Below, piece by piece: positions 7,663-14,941 of a stretch of DNA of 15,450 bases (position 1 is its first letter; every line of letters begins with the position of its first letter). The stretch comes from Vitrella brassicaformis CCMP3155 (lineage: Eukaryota > Protista > Chromerida). Location of the stretch: the NCBI GenBank assembly GCA_001179505.1, contig CDMY01000851.1, forward strand, positions 1 to 15,450. The letters run 5' to 3'. A model generated the notes under the pieces. It was not told the DNA's origin and ran no database searches. It was given only the letters and a program-made list of their open reading frames with translations. The translations under genes were made by a program, and so were the position numbers.

Positions 7663-8700
7663 ATGGCGCAGCCCATCTTTGCATTCGACCCCAAGACCGT
7701 CATCCGTACCTTTAATGGAGACAAGGACGACTGGCGTGAGTGGGAATTTACCCTCAGAGCCTTCCTCCTGGCCAAGGAGATGCCCACAGAGCGTTGATGC
7801 CTGAGAAGGAAGAAGACATTCCTCAGTTACCTGACCCGAATGATGATGGAGACCGTGGCGAGCAGCGAACGAAGGAGAGGAGTGTGTTACGACAGCTCTT
7901 CGGCTTCCTCGTCCTGCACACAGAAGGCAAGGTAAAACGGACCATCCAGTAGTCATTCGACAAGTATGGCGAGAATGGTGCACGAGCCTATTGGGAGTTG
8001 CGCAAGCGGTGCGTACCTGAGCGAGTCGTCTGTCGACATGAGGTCCTCCGCAACTTCTTCCAGTACCAGATGGAGAAGGACGATACCGACGACGCTCTCA
8101 CCGACTTCAACTTCCTGGCGAAGCAGTTGAGCGACATGGGAGAGAAACCAACACCGACAACACCAAGATAGCCGTCATGGTGAATGCCCTACCTCCTCGA
8201 TTTGAGCGTTTCAAAAGCTCGCTGGACTACCGCTTCAACGACCTCACATGGGAGCAATTCGAGGAAGCCCTCCGCAATGCCAACGACCGCATGCAGCATG
8301 CGAGAAGGATGAGCCAGCAGCGTGACCGCTTTCGACAGAAGGGCAACCAGAACGGACGCCAACATGGTCAGCCACACAATGGCAATCGACCTGACACATA
8401 TCAGGGAGGCAACAGGAACAACGAACGGCCTTACCGAGACAATCGTGACAGCCGCTACGAATGGCGACGCCAACCAAACGGCAACCCCACGGCAACAACA
8501 ACAGAAGGAACGGCAATCAGTGGAACTCATCAGGGGCGCCTTTCCGCACCTACCCGAGTGGCAATGGAGGACATCAAGGGGGCAACGGTGGACGCCAGCA
8601 GCAGCCCATCGTTCGTCACGACAAGAACGGAGATGTCATCATGAATGCGACGCGCACGAACGGCACGAGTAGCCGCAATCGGCGTGTCCACACGAATCAA
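7663..8700 (+). pseudogene. gag: Copia Gag, frameshifted
   Basis: ATG at 7663: MAQPIFAFDPKTVIRTFNGDKDDWREWEFTLRAFLLAKEM. Frameshift near 7790, in-frame TAG at 7950-7952, then ARAYWELRK...LAKQLSDMGE. Frameshift near 8160, then KIAVMVNALPPRFERFKSSL, followed by an N/Q/G/R-rich tail with another frameshift near 8485. Confidence 0.85.
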
Positions 8701-9198
8701 CTCGACGGGTGTGATCACATCAACGACACCTGCGAGCAGATAACAACCGACCTGGAAATGGTGGGGACCGTCACGGCCGTTGAGTGCGAGGAAGAGGTGG
8801 TCAACGTCAGCGGTGTGTCTGTGAGACCTACCTCCATGATGATCGATTCAGGAGCCGGCAAGACATGCTGCCACCAGCAGTTTCTCTTCGACGAAATCAA
8901 ACCACTTGACCGACACATCAAGATCGTCATGGCCGATGGCACGTCCGTACCGGCCAGAGGAGTCGGCCGCATCAAGTACACCTGTGAAGAGGTCAACAAC
9001 GGCAAGAAGACCGTGTGTGTGGATGGTGTGCTGTATGTGCCTGATCTGAAGTTCAACCTCCTCTCCGTCGCTCACCTGGTGGATCAATACTGCATCGAGT
9101 TTCTTATTGGCCCCGGCGGAGCCCACATGACCGCAACAAGGAGAGGAGACCGCTACCCGCTGGTCAGACGTGGTCGTTTCTGGTACCTGGACATGTAG
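8461..9198 (+). pseudogene. pol: Copia aspartic protease region of Pol
   Basis: MIDSGAGKTCC (D-S-G catalytic motif), IVMADGTSVPARGVGRI and VLYVPDLKFNLLSV are all present. It ends in a single TAG (9196-9198) that is in frame with the integrase ORF. Confidence 0.9.
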
Positions 9199-10620
9199 AG
9201 GAATGCCAACGACTGCCCCGTCTACTCACAGCCACGTGCCCTGCCGGCAGCAGAGTACACGACAGGCACAGCAACAGAAAGAATCATCGACTCGAGTGGT
9301 GATGATGGCGCGTTTCCCTGTTCACCTGCTGATGAAGGTCACAAGCAAACAGGAGCAATGATGGCCGAGGTCATCAGTGAGGAACTTGCCCATAAGCACT
9401 TCCTCCACTACCACGACGCAGCCGTCGACCGACTTTCTGAGGTCTGTCGCAACGCACCTGTGGTCAAGAAAGGCAAGAAGAATGAGAGAGAGCAGCGCAA
9501 GTGCGCAGTGTGTGTCCAAGCCAAGATGAAGATTCGTCCGTATCTGAACAATGCATTCCGGCATTCGTCACCTGGTGATCTGGTGCACGTCGACCTGGCG
9601 CAGATCAAGCAACTCAGCGAGAGAGGATTCAAGTACCTGATGGTCATGGTGGACGACCACAGCCGTTATGTGCAGGCCTACTTTCTCAAAAAGAAGTCCA
9701 TCGCACCGAAGGCATTTATGCACTACTGCACGGCCATCCGCATGCCCAAGGCAGTGAGGACCGACGGAGGGGCCGAGCTCATCGCCGGCACATGGAAGGC
9801 ATTCTGCGAGCAGCACCAGATACGCCAAGAACAAAGCCTACCGCACCATCAGTCACAAAACGGCGTGGCAGAACGAACGATTGGTGCGATTTGTCAGCTG
9901 ACCCGTGCAGCACTCTTTCAATCCGGCCTTCCCTCATTTTATTGGTGTTTTGCTGCGAAGACCGCCACCTACATCAAGAATCGAATGCCAACCAAGAGAA
10001 ATCCATCAGAGAAGACGCCATTTGAGCTTTTCTGGGGTTACCCACTATGCATCAGGCATATCCGCACATTCGGCGCAAGAGCCTATGTGCGTCAGCGCAA
10101 GGACCAGAGGGGCAAGCTGGATCCACGGGCGAAGTTGGGTATCCTCGTCGGCTTCGACCCCAACACGAAGGATGGTTATGTGATGTGGTTCCCTGATGAT
10201 CGTCAGTTCGTCATCTCACGAGACGTCGAAGTGGACGAGCACGTGTTTCTTGCAAAGGAGAAGCAACCAAGGGGACCACTAGGGATTGATGTGGTGTACC
10301 CCCAGACGCCCGTCTCACCTGACGAGCAGACCGACCACCATCAAGACCACCATCGTGCCCAGCAACCCGAAGATGATCGACAGCATCAAGAAGATGAGTG
10401 TGTCGACCAACACAGCCAAGATCAAGAGCCTGACAGCTCTGCATTGCGCGAAGGACCGCCAGCAGCACCACCAGTACCGCCGGCCGCTCAAGATGCTCCA
10501 GATGCAGAAGAAGCCGTCGCTGATACCGATGGAGGTGCCGCTGACAACTATCGAGTCATTCGAGAGGAAATGGGGATAGATGACGACAATGCCGAGCACC
10601 GAAGATCAGGCCGAAACCTG
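9199..10620 (+). CDS. Copia integrase (GAG-pre-integrase zinc-binding region, rve DDE core, SH3-like C-terminal region)
   Basis: The frame is open from 9199. Motifs: HKHFLH..CAVC, VHVD, VDDHSRY, RTDGGAEL, QNGVAERTI, FGARAYV, GKLDPRA, GYVMW and SRDVEVDE. The supplied ORF 9358-10704 runs past the truncation into non-element DNA. Confidence 0.9.
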
Positions 10621-11189
10621 TGTGTTGATAGTGTGTCACTACATTCCCGTCTATATCTGTGTGTGTTCATGTGTACCGAGGTGGGCGAGTATAAGCAGCG
10701 CTAAGTTAGTGACACAGCTTAGTTTCTTCCTCTTCCACATGTATATGTGTCTGTCTAGATAGATAGATACGAAACGAGCAGCACCCACATCATGCATACG
10801 AATTCATACATGCACCCCACCCATCCTAACCAGCCGGCCGCTCGGAGATGCCTTTTCAGTGCGGCTTGATGAGTGGATGGGAAAGCTATATCGTATTGTG
10901 CTTGTTTGCATGGCGATCGATCGACCGACAAACAACCAATACGACAGCGGCGTTTTCTTTCCTCCTTTTTCATTGATTAGCTTTTTGTGGATCGAGGCAT
11001 AGAGAGATGTTCATATCAGAGAAATGGCGGGCGAGGGGCGAAGATGGCCAAGGTGGATATAGAGAGGAATAATTCATTTGCTCACAGCAGTACGAATAGG
11101 AAGGCGGCTTTGTGTCAGTACTGTGTGGGTGCTTGCTGGAGATATACGTGTGAGGGCTGCATGACGGGTTGTGAGTCGATATGAATAGG

Positions 11190-11506
11190 CCTGATGCATG
11201 CATCCTGATGTGAGTATATACACACCTGCGCACAGAGACATTGGTCATATACACACACTCCAAGTCGACACGTGCATGCGCAGGGCTGCGCATACAGACA
11301 TTCATCATATATATACACACACACACACACACACTCCAAGTCCACACGTGCATGCGCAGATGTGCGCATAGAGACATTCATAATGTATACGCACTTGGAG
11401 ACATTCACCATATACACGCACTCCAAGTCCACAAGTGCATGCGCAGGTGTGCGCATATAGACATTTATTATAAAAACTCACTCCAAGTCCACAATGCACG
11501 CGCAGG
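11190..11506 (+). repeat. Degenerate minisatellite, ~60-87-bp unit
   Basis: The anchor cactccaagtc(c/g)aca..tgca(t/c)gcgcag occurs at 11256, 11332, 11419 and 11479, with variable CA/TA spacers. Confidence 0.85.
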
Positions 11507-12029
11507 TGTTGTATATACAGTGAACTGTACCTTGAACCTTGGTCCTTAACAGTCCCAGGGTTTCAAGGATACGTTTCCCTGCGGGGTGAAGGGCTAGGGA
11601 GGTCCGCCGACACGGAATGCAGGAATAAGACTTTTTGGTGTGTTTCTGGGATGCTCTTTATGTGTCATGACCGAATTGACAAATTGCAGTCGATGTGCAC
11701 ACAGTTGATTGAAGCTTAACGAACTGCCATCCATCCATTCATCGTCCATCGTGCATTGCATGCAGTGACACAAACGTCAATACACATAGACAGTGGGCTG
11801 CAAGGAGAAAAAATCCTCAGCCCAATCAGGCTATTTGCCGGCAGCAGTCCGCCGCCGCTGTCCAGCCCCATTTCGACGGCGCGCCCTGGGTCCGTCCGCT
11901 CGGGCCGGATCGGTTGGGACCACCCCGGTTCCCAAACGCCAGGCCCTTTTGGGTCGTCGTCCCAGGACGCAGCGTGTCCCGCTCCCTGCCAGCACAAGGA
12001 CGTGTCCGGCCAGCTGGGTGGGCGCCCGT

Positions 12030-12422
12030 TCACTCCGCAACGTTGCGCGGGCCCGCCACAACGATCCGATAGCCCTCCGGGCCCTCGAGCCAGATCTCGT
12101 GCTGCCGACCGTTGGGATTGTAGAGCGGCCCGTCCAGGACCTTTGCGCTCGCTTTCTCCACCCGAGCCACGAGCCCATCGAAGTCGTCGGTCGAGAACCA
12201 GAGAAGCACACCATTGCCGCGGGACGGATTCGACTCGTCGCCGAGGTGGGGATGCTCGTGGGTGTCCCAAGCGTGCAACTGGACGACCAGCGCTTCACCG
12301 TCCATGAGCATCTCGTATTCCTGACCTCCATGGCCGGAGCAAAGGCCGAGGACCTCCTGGAACCACTTCGAGCAGGCTTCGACGTCACGAACGACGATCA
12401 TCGGCTGGGGTCGCATCATCAC
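12030..12422 (-). CDS. VOC/glyoxalase-bleomycin-resistance superfamily protein, bacterial type, intronless (~130 aa)
   Basis: MRPQPMIVVRDVEACSKWFQEVLG...LVVQLHAW...GNGVLLWFSTDDFDGLVARVEKASAKVLDGPLYNPNGRQHEIWLEGPEGYRIVVAGP has the paired beta-alpha-beta-beta-beta VOC pattern. GC is high (40/60 in line 12241). Likely start is GTG 12422 or ATG 12419. Confidence 0.88.
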   Translation of the reverse strand: MMMRPQPMIVVRDVEACSKWFQEVLGLCSGHGGQEYEMLMDGEALVVQLHAWDTHEHPHLGDESNPSRGNGVLLWFSTDDFDGLVARVEKASAKVLDGPLYNPNGRQHEIWLEGPEGYRIVVAGPRNVAE

Positions 12423-12429
12423 TCTGGTC

Positions 12430-12436
12430 CCTCCTC
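12430..12436 (-). promoter_or_regulatory. Shine-Dalgarno sequence GAGGAGG
   Basis: It lies 7 nt upstream of the GTG at 12422 and 10 nt upstream of the ATG at 12419. Confidence 0.75.
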
Positions 12437-12530
12437 GTGCCGACAAGCGTGGCAGCGTCAGTCTGTTGTATACACAGCGAAACGCATCCTTGAAACCCTG
12501 GGACTGTTAAGGTCCCAGGGTTTCACTTAA

Positions 12531-12878
12531 CAGTCCCAGNNNNNNNNNNNNNNNNNNNNNNNNNNNNNNNNNNNNNNNNNNNNNNNNNNNNNNNNNNNNN
12601 NNNNNNNNNNNNNNNNNNNNNNNNNNNNNNNNNNNNNNNNNNNNNNNNNNNNNNNNNNNNNNNNNNNNNNNNNNNNNNNNNNNNNNNNNNNNNNNNNNNN
12701 NNNNNNNNNNNNNNNNNNNNNNNNNNNNNNNNNNNNNNNNNNNNNNNNNNNNNNNNNNNNNNNNNNNNNNNNNNNNNNNNNNNNNNNNNNNNNNNNNNNN
12801 NNNNNNNNNNNNNNNNNNNNNNNNNNNNNNNNNNNNNNNGCAGGGTTTCAAGGATGCGTTTCGCTGCGGGGTGAAGGG
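12531..12878 (+). mobile_element. Second left end of the same TIR family, split by the 300-N gap
   Basis: TTAA (12527-12530) is followed by CAGTCCCAG, then the gap, then CAGGGTTTCAAGGATGCGTTTCGCTGCGGGGTGAAGGG. The end shares the left-specific tail CGGGGTGAAGGG with 11582-11593. Confidence 0.75.
12540..12839. other. Assembly gap (exactly 300 N)
   Basis: The sequences on either side join into one TIR, so the true gap may be near zero. Confidence 0.95.
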
Positions 12879-13049
12879 TTTTGTTAGGGTGTGTTGACCG
12901 TGAAATGGTGCACATTTTGACGGACAATAATTGAATTTCAAAGTTAGTCTGCCCTCCCTCCCACTATGCACATCCCCTCCCGCTAAACATCTGTGCATCA
13001 CGCATCAACCATCTGTCCCGCCCGACTTCCCCTCCCTCCCTCCTGCTAT

Positions 13050-13370
13050 CTACACACCATTCACAAAAGGGTTGAACTCCTTCGTCTGGACGGATTTGTG
13101 TTCTTTGGTGATCTCATCCGTCTGCACTTCTTTGCTGATCTTGATATCGGGACCGAAGATAGATGCACATTTGAATGCGTTTGATGAGAAGAAATCTTGC
13201 GTCGGTGTCTTCGGCTGCTGCTTCGGCTTCTCATAGTTCAACCTCGTCCTCTTCTTTTTCTCCTCGTCCTCAAACTCTTCCTTTTTGTAACCGAAAGGAT
13301 TGGCGTGTGTATCCATGTATCCCTTGCCATCATAGCGTTTGACGCGTTTCATAGGGTCTTCTCCTGACAT
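13050..13370 (-). CDS. Hypothetical Lys/Glu-rich protein, divergent from polB
   Basis: It has a genuine ATG start and 106 codons with protein-like composition (MSGEDPMKRVKRYDGKGYMDTHANPFGYKKEEFEDEEKKKR...). No family was recognised, and it may be spliced at its 3' end. Confidence 0.4.
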   Translation of the reverse strand: MSGEDPMKRVKRYDGKGYMDTHANPFGYKKEEFEDEEKKKRTRLNYEKPKQQPKTPTQDFFSSNAFKCASIFGPDIKISKEVQTDEITKEHKSVQTKEFNPFVNGV

Positions 13371-13895
13371 GGACGCCGGAACAACGACGAAAAGGCCGAT
13401 GTGTATCCGCTTTGGCTCGGATAGATTAGTTTCACGAATGGATTAAGTTTCACGTACATATATAAAACTAATTGATATATTATATAAATAGAGGAGGTGA
13501 GAATAAACAAACCTTACAAACTACTACTCTTAAACCACCACCTGAATTGACACCCGAATATACAACATTAAGTCTCATACTTGAAGACGAAAACTTTCAA
13601 TAACTCATTGAAAGTATAATCTTCTTTTACAGTACTATTAGTAATATATGAGAATTAATAATGACTATCAGTATCGGTAATAAAAAATGGTAATGATGAT
13701 TGTTGAAAGTATGGATAATGAAAATTAATTTCAGTATTCAATAATGAGTATTCATCATTATCTTCTTTAGTTAGTCCTATGATATATCAGTATTACCACT
13801 TTCAAGTGCATAGACTTTAATGAAATAATAACCTGATCTATTGAATTTAAAACTTTTATTGTCGTCTTCATGCAGCGTTATGACATCGTAATTGA

Positions 13896-14941
13896 AATAC
13901 AACAGAGATATACGCATGTGGATACATGATTAATGGTCAGTATAATATGGACAAAGGTGAAGGTTGTTTTCAGGTATTTGTCAATAAGATCAAATATTTA
14001 TCTGATAAAATTATAACAGCATATAGCGGTTGCAGATTTGATTTCCATTATTTACTCTCTTATTTGATACACGATGGCGTTGAGATAAAAAAACTTATTG
14101 TTAACAGCGGAAGAATTATGGGGTTTGAGTTTGGTAATAATAACAAAGTATTTGATATTAATCTATTTCTTAACACTTCTTTGAAAAAAGCATGTGAGGA
14201 TTTTAAAATTGGTAAACCAAAAGGGGATTTTGATCATGAAAAGATTAAAATATAGGACGATGTGAAGCAATGGGAGTGCGAATGGAGACCGTATTTAAAA
14301 AGAGATGTTGAAGTATTGATGGAACTAATTGAAACGTTTGGTCGTCTTGTATATGATAAGTATCAATGTAATATTACAAGATTTATGACAGGCAGTCAGA
14401 TGACTTGCGATTTATGGCATTCACAATTAGTATTAGATGATTTTACTTATTTGCCAACAGAAGAGGAGAACAGAGTTAATAGAGAAGCGACAAGAGGTCC
14501 ACATTGTCTGCCTCATATCAAAGACTATGTAAGTAAGTTGTACAAATTAGTTGAAGCATTAAATTGTGTCAAAGAGTTTGATAAAAAACAAAGCATAAAG
14601 AAAAAGATGGATATATTAAGTGAAAGAGTAAATAGAGGAATAGTAGAAATTAACCAAAAATCTTCTCCTTTCCTAGTTATCATTCTATAAGTTATGATAC
14701 ATATATGTCAAGTGAATATAAGAAAATGCAAGAGAACTTTTATAACTACATCCAAGAAAGTAAAGATTATATGATCTGCATTGATGTCAGCAGTCTATAT
14801 CCAACAGCAATGGCAAAATGTGAGTATCCGGTTGGAAAACGCAGAAGATCGCTTAATCAGAAGCAAGAGTTTGAAAAAAGCACAATAGGAATATACTATA
14901 TTGAATACACACCACCAAGTAATATCAGAGTTCCCATATGA
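13896..14941 (+). pseudogene. polB: Family B DNA polymerase, protein-primed/Polinton-virus type, degenerate and 3'-truncated
   Basis: ExoII-like AYSGCRFDFHYLL; LNTSLKKACEDFKIGKPKGDFDH; ExoIII YLKRDV; palm motif A DVSSLYPTAM followed by YPVG. There is an in-frame TAG at 14253-14255 and a stop plus frameshift at 14688-14705. The region is AT-rich (~30% GC by eye), intronless, and cut off at ~14938 before motifs B and C. Confidence 0.88.

Follow-up and report, generated by a model that had tools for sequence, protein, structure and literature searches.

Does a small, bacterial-looking gene on a scaffold of the alga Vitrella brassicaformis CCMP3155 really belong to the alga's nuclear genome, and if it does, how was it taken up? 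The gene is an open reading frame (ORF) of the VOC/glyoxalase type that lies between inverted repeats on contig CDMY01000851.1 (assembly GCA_001179505.1). It sits in a stretch of 15,450 nucleotides that we analyzed as a whole and call the window. Bacterial genes reported from protists often turn out to be artefacts of contaminated cultures. For this alga, bacteria accounted for 80% of the reads, and 620 scaffolds had to be taken out as bacterial (PMC4501334; Woo et al. 2015), so a chimera with a contaminant had to be tested first. The VOC gene passes the obvious contamination tests: its ancestry is bacterial, it is intact, it is continuous with host-like DNA and with both repeat arms, and its sequencing depth is that of the host. 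We conclude that the Vitrella nuclear genome has probably acquired, inside a repeat-bounded unit, about 620 bp of DNA from a marine bacterium of high GC content, and that this DNA includes a complete VOC gene.

The gene and the DNA on either side of it consist of the following parts (positions are those of the window).

11596 to 11829, no strand: host-like segment of 234 bp with 47% GC, assigned by GC and 4-mer composition and joined to the ORF in the contigs of every run examined
11830 to 12451, no strand: block of bacterial-type composition, about 620 bp, delimited by GC, by 4-mer score, and by repeat-unit homology that starts at 12452
11830 to 12029, no strand: GC-rich 3' flank, apparently non-coding, as no frame has codon-position periodicity in GC
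12030 to 12419 (stop included), minus strand: intact ORF of the VOC/glyoxalase fold, 129 amino acids, identified by a Pfam match, alignment, AlphaFold2, and Foldseek
12429 to 12436, minus strand: Shine-Dalgarno-like sequence GAGGAGGG, read from the sequence

The reading frame is uninterrupted from a TTG at 12446 to 12030, which would give 138 amino acids, and it has no intron. The alignment shows the bacterial homologues starting at the position of the ATG at 12419, which gives a protein of 129 amino acids that begins MMRPQPM. This protein carries the conserved residue at all of the invariant columns of the family. An earlier reading of the letters alone, made without database searches (the sequence-only reading), had described an intact, intronless, GC-rich ORF, and this is what we find. 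It had also noticed a Shine-Dalgarno site about 30 bp inside the right end of the element. The site is there, as GAGGAGGG, at a different distance: about 39 nt separate it from the right arm's inner edge. From the end of its GGAGG it is 7 nt to a GTG at 12422 and 10 nt to the ATG, and a similar purine-rich motif is in the same position in most of the homologous bacterial loci. The protein is already in public databases, unremarked. It is annotated there with 123 amino acids from a later ATG, and the exact protein is recorded once, on CDMY01000851.1, whose accession range belongs to the Vitrella assembly of PMC4501334. A literature search returned no paper that ties Vitrella to this VOC gene or to TTAA transposons.

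The protein matches Pfam PF00903 with 30.8 bits (the cut-off is 20.6) over residues 16-129 of the 138-residue reading. It does not match any NCBIfam model at E ≤ 0.01, equivalogs included, or any PADLOC family. An AlphaFold2 model built from an alignment of 120 sequences has a mean predicted local distance difference test score (pLDDT) of 90.8 and the element order E-H-E-E / E-H-E-E-E. The predicted structure is thus two tandem beta-alpha-beta-beta-beta modules, which is the VOC fold. A search of the PDB by sequence gives a best E of only about 7e-4, and Foldseek finds 303 PDB matches at E ≤ 0.001, of which the top ones listed are small VOC-fold proteins: STM3117 from Salmonella (3huh/3hnq), two Vibrio integron-cassette proteins (VCH_CASS1 and VPC_CASS1; 3ey7/3ey8), FosA, FosB, and human GLOD5. 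These are of similar size (about 125-140 amino acids) and share the paired fold predicted here (TM scores of 0.65-0.75 and Foldseek E of about 1e-8). They differ from our protein in sequence, with identities of only 13-24%.

The family-invariant residues H30, Y35, Q47, H49, H56, E108, and W110 point to a possible site for a metal or ligand, and there is no clean correspondence between them and the H/Q-E-H-E metal ligands of glyoxalase I. From our own reading of the alignment against the ligands of GloA and GLO1, the first ligand position is probably a conserved Gln here rather than a His. The sequence-only reading had held that the biochemical function could not be told from sequence. Our best guess is that the product would work in the cytosol as a homodimer, either as an enzyme that acts on a small electrophile or an antibiotic-like compound or as a protein that binds one.

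The composition of the DNA changes sharply near 11830. The ORF has 63% GC, the 200 bp past its stop (11830-12029) have 71.5%, 11596-11829 has 47%, and host DNA has about 55%, so the GC-rich tail that had been noticed beyond the stop is real. We also used a 4-mer log-odds score, trained on the window's host DNA versus 102 kb of bacterial loci. The score is +0.11 to +0.13 across 11830-12446, which is in the bacterial range (the top 200-bp host window reaches 0.003), and it falls to -0.12, in the host range, across 11596-11829. GC at third codon positions is 0.79 in the VOC ORF versus 0.44-0.70 in the other ORFs of the window, which are host ORFs, and the observed-to-expected ratio of CpG is 1.14 versus 0.87 for the host. 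On the other side of the gene, homology between two repeat units starts at 12452, and therefore the block of bacterial type spans about 11830-12451. It consists of a 5' leader of 32 nt, the ORF, and the 3' flank of 200 bp. With just 32 nt of the block in front of the ATG, no recognizable bacterial promoter came along. The flank has no blastn or tblastx match past the coding sequence in 25 bacterial and metagenomic loci, and neither the flank nor the VOC piece has a DNA match in plasmid or phage collections. We considered an intrinsic terminator in the minus-strand direction at 11833-11808 (a weak hairpin and a run of T), and we rejected it, as one weak match was found and 0.8 were expected by chance.

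Where did the gene come from? A word-based protein search returned 390 relatives, the best with 80-86% amino-acid identity, and all of the relatives that have names are bacterial. The nearest are proteins from metagenome-assembled genomes (MAGs) of Bradymonadales and Polyangiaceae and from sediment metagenomes, at 83-86%. By name, the relatives run from Bradymonadales (84%) and Polyangiaceae (83%) through "Deltaproteobacteria" (82%), Bradymonadaceae (79%), Planctomycetota (76%), and Microvenator (72%) to Nannocystaceae (68%) and Microthrix (66%), and further named relatives fall in Myxococcota, Planctomycetota, and Actinomycetota. The single closest protein is from a sediment metagenome and has a dense gene context of bacterial type. 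The nearest clusters in the ESM Atlas are 100% Bacteria. At the DNA level, identity to the bacterial relatives is about 80% and is confined to the coding sequence. Among 185,579 prokaryote species, each represented by one genome, there is no match above 84% amino-acid identity. In a maximum-likelihood tree of 82 rows, the algal protein lies inside a shallow bacterial cluster, on an end branch of 0.19 (the median is 0.25), with no eukaryotic sister group, and the branch support for this nesting is weak. The gene is thus bacterial in origin, and the donor was apparently of the Myxococcota/Bradymonadales kind. The sequence-only reading was right about a high-GC bacterial lineage, and the old eukaryotic clade that would have spoken against it does not appear. 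It went too far in calling the acquisition very recent: the transfer is not datable, and the nearest known donor has only about 80% DNA identity. The composition has been little ameliorated, and this, together with the preserved ribosome-binding motif and the intactness of the conserved residues, suggests a fairly young transfer.

The gene is joined to host-like DNA in contigs that were assembled from reads. The Logan contigs of four runs, ERR558151 (961 nt), ERR558149 (953 nt), ERR558200 (926 nt), and SRR505720 (926 nt), each hold the ORF, the segment 11596-11829, and parts of both arms in one piece, and they show 0-4 differences. The host-like DNA in these contigs amounts to 286 bp whose composition is outside of the bacterial range. 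Contigs from four mapped runs, namely two of culture DNA, one of a marine-sediment metagenome, and one that is probably RNA, show the same continuity. Some of the Vitrella DNA was sequenced at a second centre (PMC4501334). The contigs of the four runs vary at six sites (11578, 11672, 11849, 11955, 12438, and 12485), all from one strain, and the mixed combinations at these sites suggest two haplotypes or two copies of the unit. We take SRR505720 to be from the second centre, which is an assumption of ours.

The depth of the unit is also that of the alga. These depths are word depths of contigs rather than depths of raw reads. The element has a depth of 41.6 in run X1 (34.6-44.1 for unique flanks), 22.4 in X3 (12.8-18.7), 10.3 in X2 (4.5-6.5), and 24.7 in X9 (25.8), so the ratio of element to unique flank is 1.0-1.8 in all four, as expected for single-copy host DNA. 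In the three DNA-type runs, a copia element and a satellite from the same window hold their relative excess. We would not expect a bacterium in the culture to track algal depth so closely in every preparation. The sequence-only reading had proposed that a chimera would be betrayed by unbridged repeats and by a depth unlike the host's. The contigs bridge the arms to the ORF and the depth matches, and a contaminant chimera is unlikely.

Not all of these runs are from the culture. Several marine-sediment metagenome runs from two studies (X2, X10, X14, and others) contain the stretch, and X2 has the copia element and the satellite in Vitrella-like proportions. Either Vitrella DNA was in the samples, or these are cases of carry-over or mislabelling. 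The X2 contig has 29 letters past 12471 that depart from the window, and the right arm may be different or absent in that sample. X3 is labelled as another organism, its sister runs are without the stretch, and its copia and satellite proportions are Vitrella-like. The likely cause is a wrong label or carry-over, which makes the runs less independent than they seem from their labels.

If the gene was integrated without a promoter, is it expressed? Of the sampled words, a share of 0.56 is present in each of two small runs (25-28 million contig letters) that were guessed to be RNA. The one that we mapped has a contig of 712 nt, 11726-12437, that is shorter at both ends than every DNA contig. In this run, neither the unique intergenic DNA at 10532-11147 nor the AT-rich DNA at 13458-13900 is covered, and a second contig, 13036-13409, lies over a neighboring small ORF at a depth equal to that of the VOC contig. 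The VOC contig is suggestive of a transcript whose start lies to the right of 12437 and whose end falls within the host-like segment, and the segment 11596-11829 probably holds the transcript's 3' end. We imagine that the bacterial fragment would have entered as free DNA and would then have been captured into or between resident repeat elements, for instance as filler DNA during the repair of a break or gap. Transcription would now begin at a promoter of the host or of the element to the right of 12437, with processing in the host-like segment near 11726. The repeat element may now supply both the promoter and the 3' signals to the VOC ORF.

Several observations weigh against an integrated bacterial fragment. 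The prior for contamination is high, given the state of the culture. Among the contigs of the runs examined, none joins the unit to unique host genes: all of them end within the repeat arms, where a stretch of about 30-38 nt that both arms share breaks the de Bruijn graph. To the left, the link to unique host DNA runs only via a satellite of very high depth, and to the right it is interrupted by a gap of 300 N. All of the culture-derived runs are from one non-axenic strain, and cross-contamination may mean that neither the sediment metagenomes nor the run labelled as another organism is independent. None of the six polymorphic sites falls in the 390-nt ORF, a count that is biased because the contigs were fetched by an exact protein match. 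As to ancestry, the tree has almost no resolution (of its 79 inner branches, 1 is starred), and the homologues are mostly metagenome proteins without an organism name. Finally, the RNA status of both probable RNA runs is a guess by software.

If the gene was transferred, was it carried by a mobile element? The repeats that surround it are as follows.

11148 to 11500, no strand: satellite of 76-87-bp units, 3-4 copies here, directly to the left of J1
11496 to 11620, plus strand: junction J1, consisting of a degenerate half that resembles the right arm, TTAA, the left arm, and conserved asymmetric flanks (fold z-score -2.7)
11549 to 11581, plus strand: left inverted-repeat arm, with TTAA at 11545-11548 before it
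12452 to 12900, plus strand: junction J2, consisting of the right arm, TTAA, a 16-nt fragment of an arm, TTAA, and the next left arm (hairpin z-score -5.2)
12475 to 12507, minus strand: right inverted-repeat arm, followed by TTAA at 12508-12511

The terminal inverted repeats (TIRs) that the sequence-only reading had reported around the gene are present, with arms of 33-45 nt and TTAA on both sides. Including an imperfect outer extension, the arms at 11537-11581 and 12475-12519 are 45 nt long and 91% complementary, where none are expected by chance, and in the read-based contigs the two arms, read as reverse complements, agree without a difference over about 30-38 nt. The unit between them is 959 bp, with repeats of 33 nt plus TTAA. 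J1 and J2 (12452-12539 with 12840-12900) align as direct repeats of about 125 bp. Each junction is a TTAA-centred palindrome that has conserved asymmetric flanks and folds as a hairpin. Since TTAA sits at the center of a larger palindrome, a target-site duplication cannot be distinguished from shared structure. The 300-N gap (12540-12839) begins 21 nt past the right arm and cuts the next left arm. Its edges overlap in sequence within the arm (one ends CAGTCCCAG and the other starts GCAGGGTTTC), and the true length of the gap is therefore probably about 0, with the palindrome as its cause. There are at least two or three such units, head to tail.

Other interpretations of the repeat were rejected. 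A palindrome from a library adaptor or linker does not fit, as the copies of the repeat differ and they occur in libraries from two centres and several years; we also compared them with known linker sequences. A right end for the next unit, near 14941, rests on a match of 10 letters, which is below the maximum in shuffled sequence. As for the satellite, its summed contig depth is about 1e5-2.5e5 versus about 40 for single-copy DNA, which we read as thousands of copies in the genome, and its unit resembles the left flank of J1.

The alternative that survives best accepts the transfer and does away with the vehicle. The repeats would be copies of a palindromic foldback or fragile site of about 125 bp, and the DNA would have been captured, or the unit duplicated, during break repair. 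We take this seriously, though we would not favor it. It accounts for the form of J1 and J2, which are direct repeats with asymmetric conserved flanks and TTAA-centred hairpins. Because the inverted repeat continues imperfectly outside the TTAA, the TTAA need not be a target-site duplication. The 15,450-nt window holds no further copy of the arm that would close the neighboring "elements" and no transposase, and the repeat arm has no exact match in the JGI metagenomes or in IMG/VR. On the other hand, conserved subterminal sequence around unrelated interiors is how non-autonomous TIR families look, TTAA is a classic target site and flanks both arms, and the identity of the arms over about 30-38 nt in the read-based contigs would fit a young insertion or active homogenization.

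The opposite idea is that Vitrella has a family of TTAA-flanked, transposase-less TIR elements that takes up foreign DNA head to tail, with the ends supplying a promoter and 3' signals, so that a promoterless prokaryotic ORF could be expressed at once. One cargo would be the VOC gene together with its ribosome-binding site, and the adjoining unit would carry a piece of a DNA polymerase of virus or plasmid type. We are doubtful about this more ambitious proposal. The sequence-only reading had the gene "caught in its vehicle," which goes beyond the evidence: only two copies of the repeat were examined, and we saw no transposase and no empty site. The junctions fit head-to-tail non-autonomous TIR elements and capture by foldback repeats equally well. 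Also, a eukaryotic TIR element could not have fetched a gene from a bacterium. At most, it would have captured a fragment that had already entered. The transposon vehicle is a possibility, and the transfer of a complete VOC gene from a bacterium to the alga is well supported.

A poorer alternative is that the 961-bp piece is from a bacterium or plasmid in the culture and was joined to the scaffold through the satellite and the scaffold gap. Besides the composition of the reads, the removal of bacterial scaffolds by hand, and links to unique host DNA that pass only through those two weak places, it could be argued that small VOC genes are typical mobile cargo in bacteria and that Vibrio integron-cassette proteins are among the best fold matches. 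We find this improbable. The algal depth in four runs and the 286 bp that are not of bacterial composition argue against it; the arms of the piece recur beside the next contig, which is also of algal depth; the probable RNA runs give a discrete, transcript-like contig and leave intergenic DNA uncovered; and neither the 185,579 prokaryote species, at more than 84% amino-acid identity, nor the plasmids and phages contain a match. The weakest alternative, that this is an old, vertically inherited eukaryotic gene that merely looks bacterial, can point to the presence of VOC proteins in all domains and to closest matches that are mostly unnamed metagenome proteins, and we see next to no chance of it, given an intronless gene on a scaffold with a 563-residue lipoxygenase call, a bacterial ribosome-binding motif and a conserved bacterial start, a sharp island of composition, 83-86% identity to proteins of bacterial MAGs with dense bacterial neighborhoods, and nearest Atlas clusters that are entirely bacterial.

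The rest of the window is a mixture. The lipoxygenase gene call (563 amino acids, minus strand) starts at about 6363, has multiple exons, and runs off the fetched locus. The copia-type retroelement, at 8177-10704, has Pol_BBD, rve integrase core, and SH3-like domains and is at about 40x the single-copy depth. In the next unit, a Lys/Glu-rich ORF of 106 amino acids (13050-13370, minus strand) has no Pfam match. Beyond it, a block of 30% GC at 13926-14941 holds three consecutive ORF pieces of a protein-primed DNA polymerase B of organellar or viral type (PF03175). This polB fragment is broken by stops and ends abruptly at 14941, just after DVSSLYP. The polB block is a second compositionally foreign cargo, beside the bacterial one.

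What the locus means depends on what the repeats are. Under our preferred reading, the integrated bacterial fragment offers a rare view of a foreign gene at an early stage of assimilation, in an alga closely related to the apicomplexan parasites. If the repeats are the ends of mobile elements with expression signals, then it would show how a promoterless prokaryotic ORF becomes a working eukaryotic gene. If there is indeed a TIR family that collects foreign DNA, then an alveolate would have, in transposons, a way to fix and domesticate genes that it acquired horizontally. If the repeats are not mobile, then this is one more well-supported single-gene transfer.

How does the locus compare with known systems? 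An array of unrelated short cargos that are separated by imperfect palindromes is reminiscent of integron cassettes, and VOC genes are a common cassette cargo. In the attC sites of integrons, the palindrome has its core sites, R'' (consensus RYYYAAC) and R' (consensus GTTRRRY), at its outer ends. We rejected attC for the Vitrella repeats. First, GTTAAC is central here, and the outer ends are CAGCGAAACG.../...CGTTTCGCTG, which are not R''/R' core sites. Second, the neighbors are host-like DNA and the organellar or viral-type polB fragment, and the depth is algal.

The units resemble Pack-MULE and Pack-CACTA elements, and elements of the piggyBac type, in that they have short TIRs, TTAA on both sides, conserved subterminal sequence, an unrelated interior, and no transposase that we could see. 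The arms start CAGTCCC, unlike the piggyBac ends, which have the form CCC...GGG. Unlike Pack elements, which carry pieces of the host's own genes, the cargo here is bacterial, and unlike the usual TTAA elements, the Vitrella units are arranged head to tail and share single TTAA sites.

A further comparison is with transfers of single metabolic or detoxification genes from bacteria to protists. Like these, the VOC gene is intronless, is of bacterial ancestry, and lies on a nuclear scaffold at host depth, and it may be transcribed. Unlike most of the transfers that have been described, it keeps a Shine-Dalgarno motif, a bacterial GC content at third codon positions, and a bacterial flank of 200 bp, so that it looks less assimilated. 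It also sits between inverted repeats.

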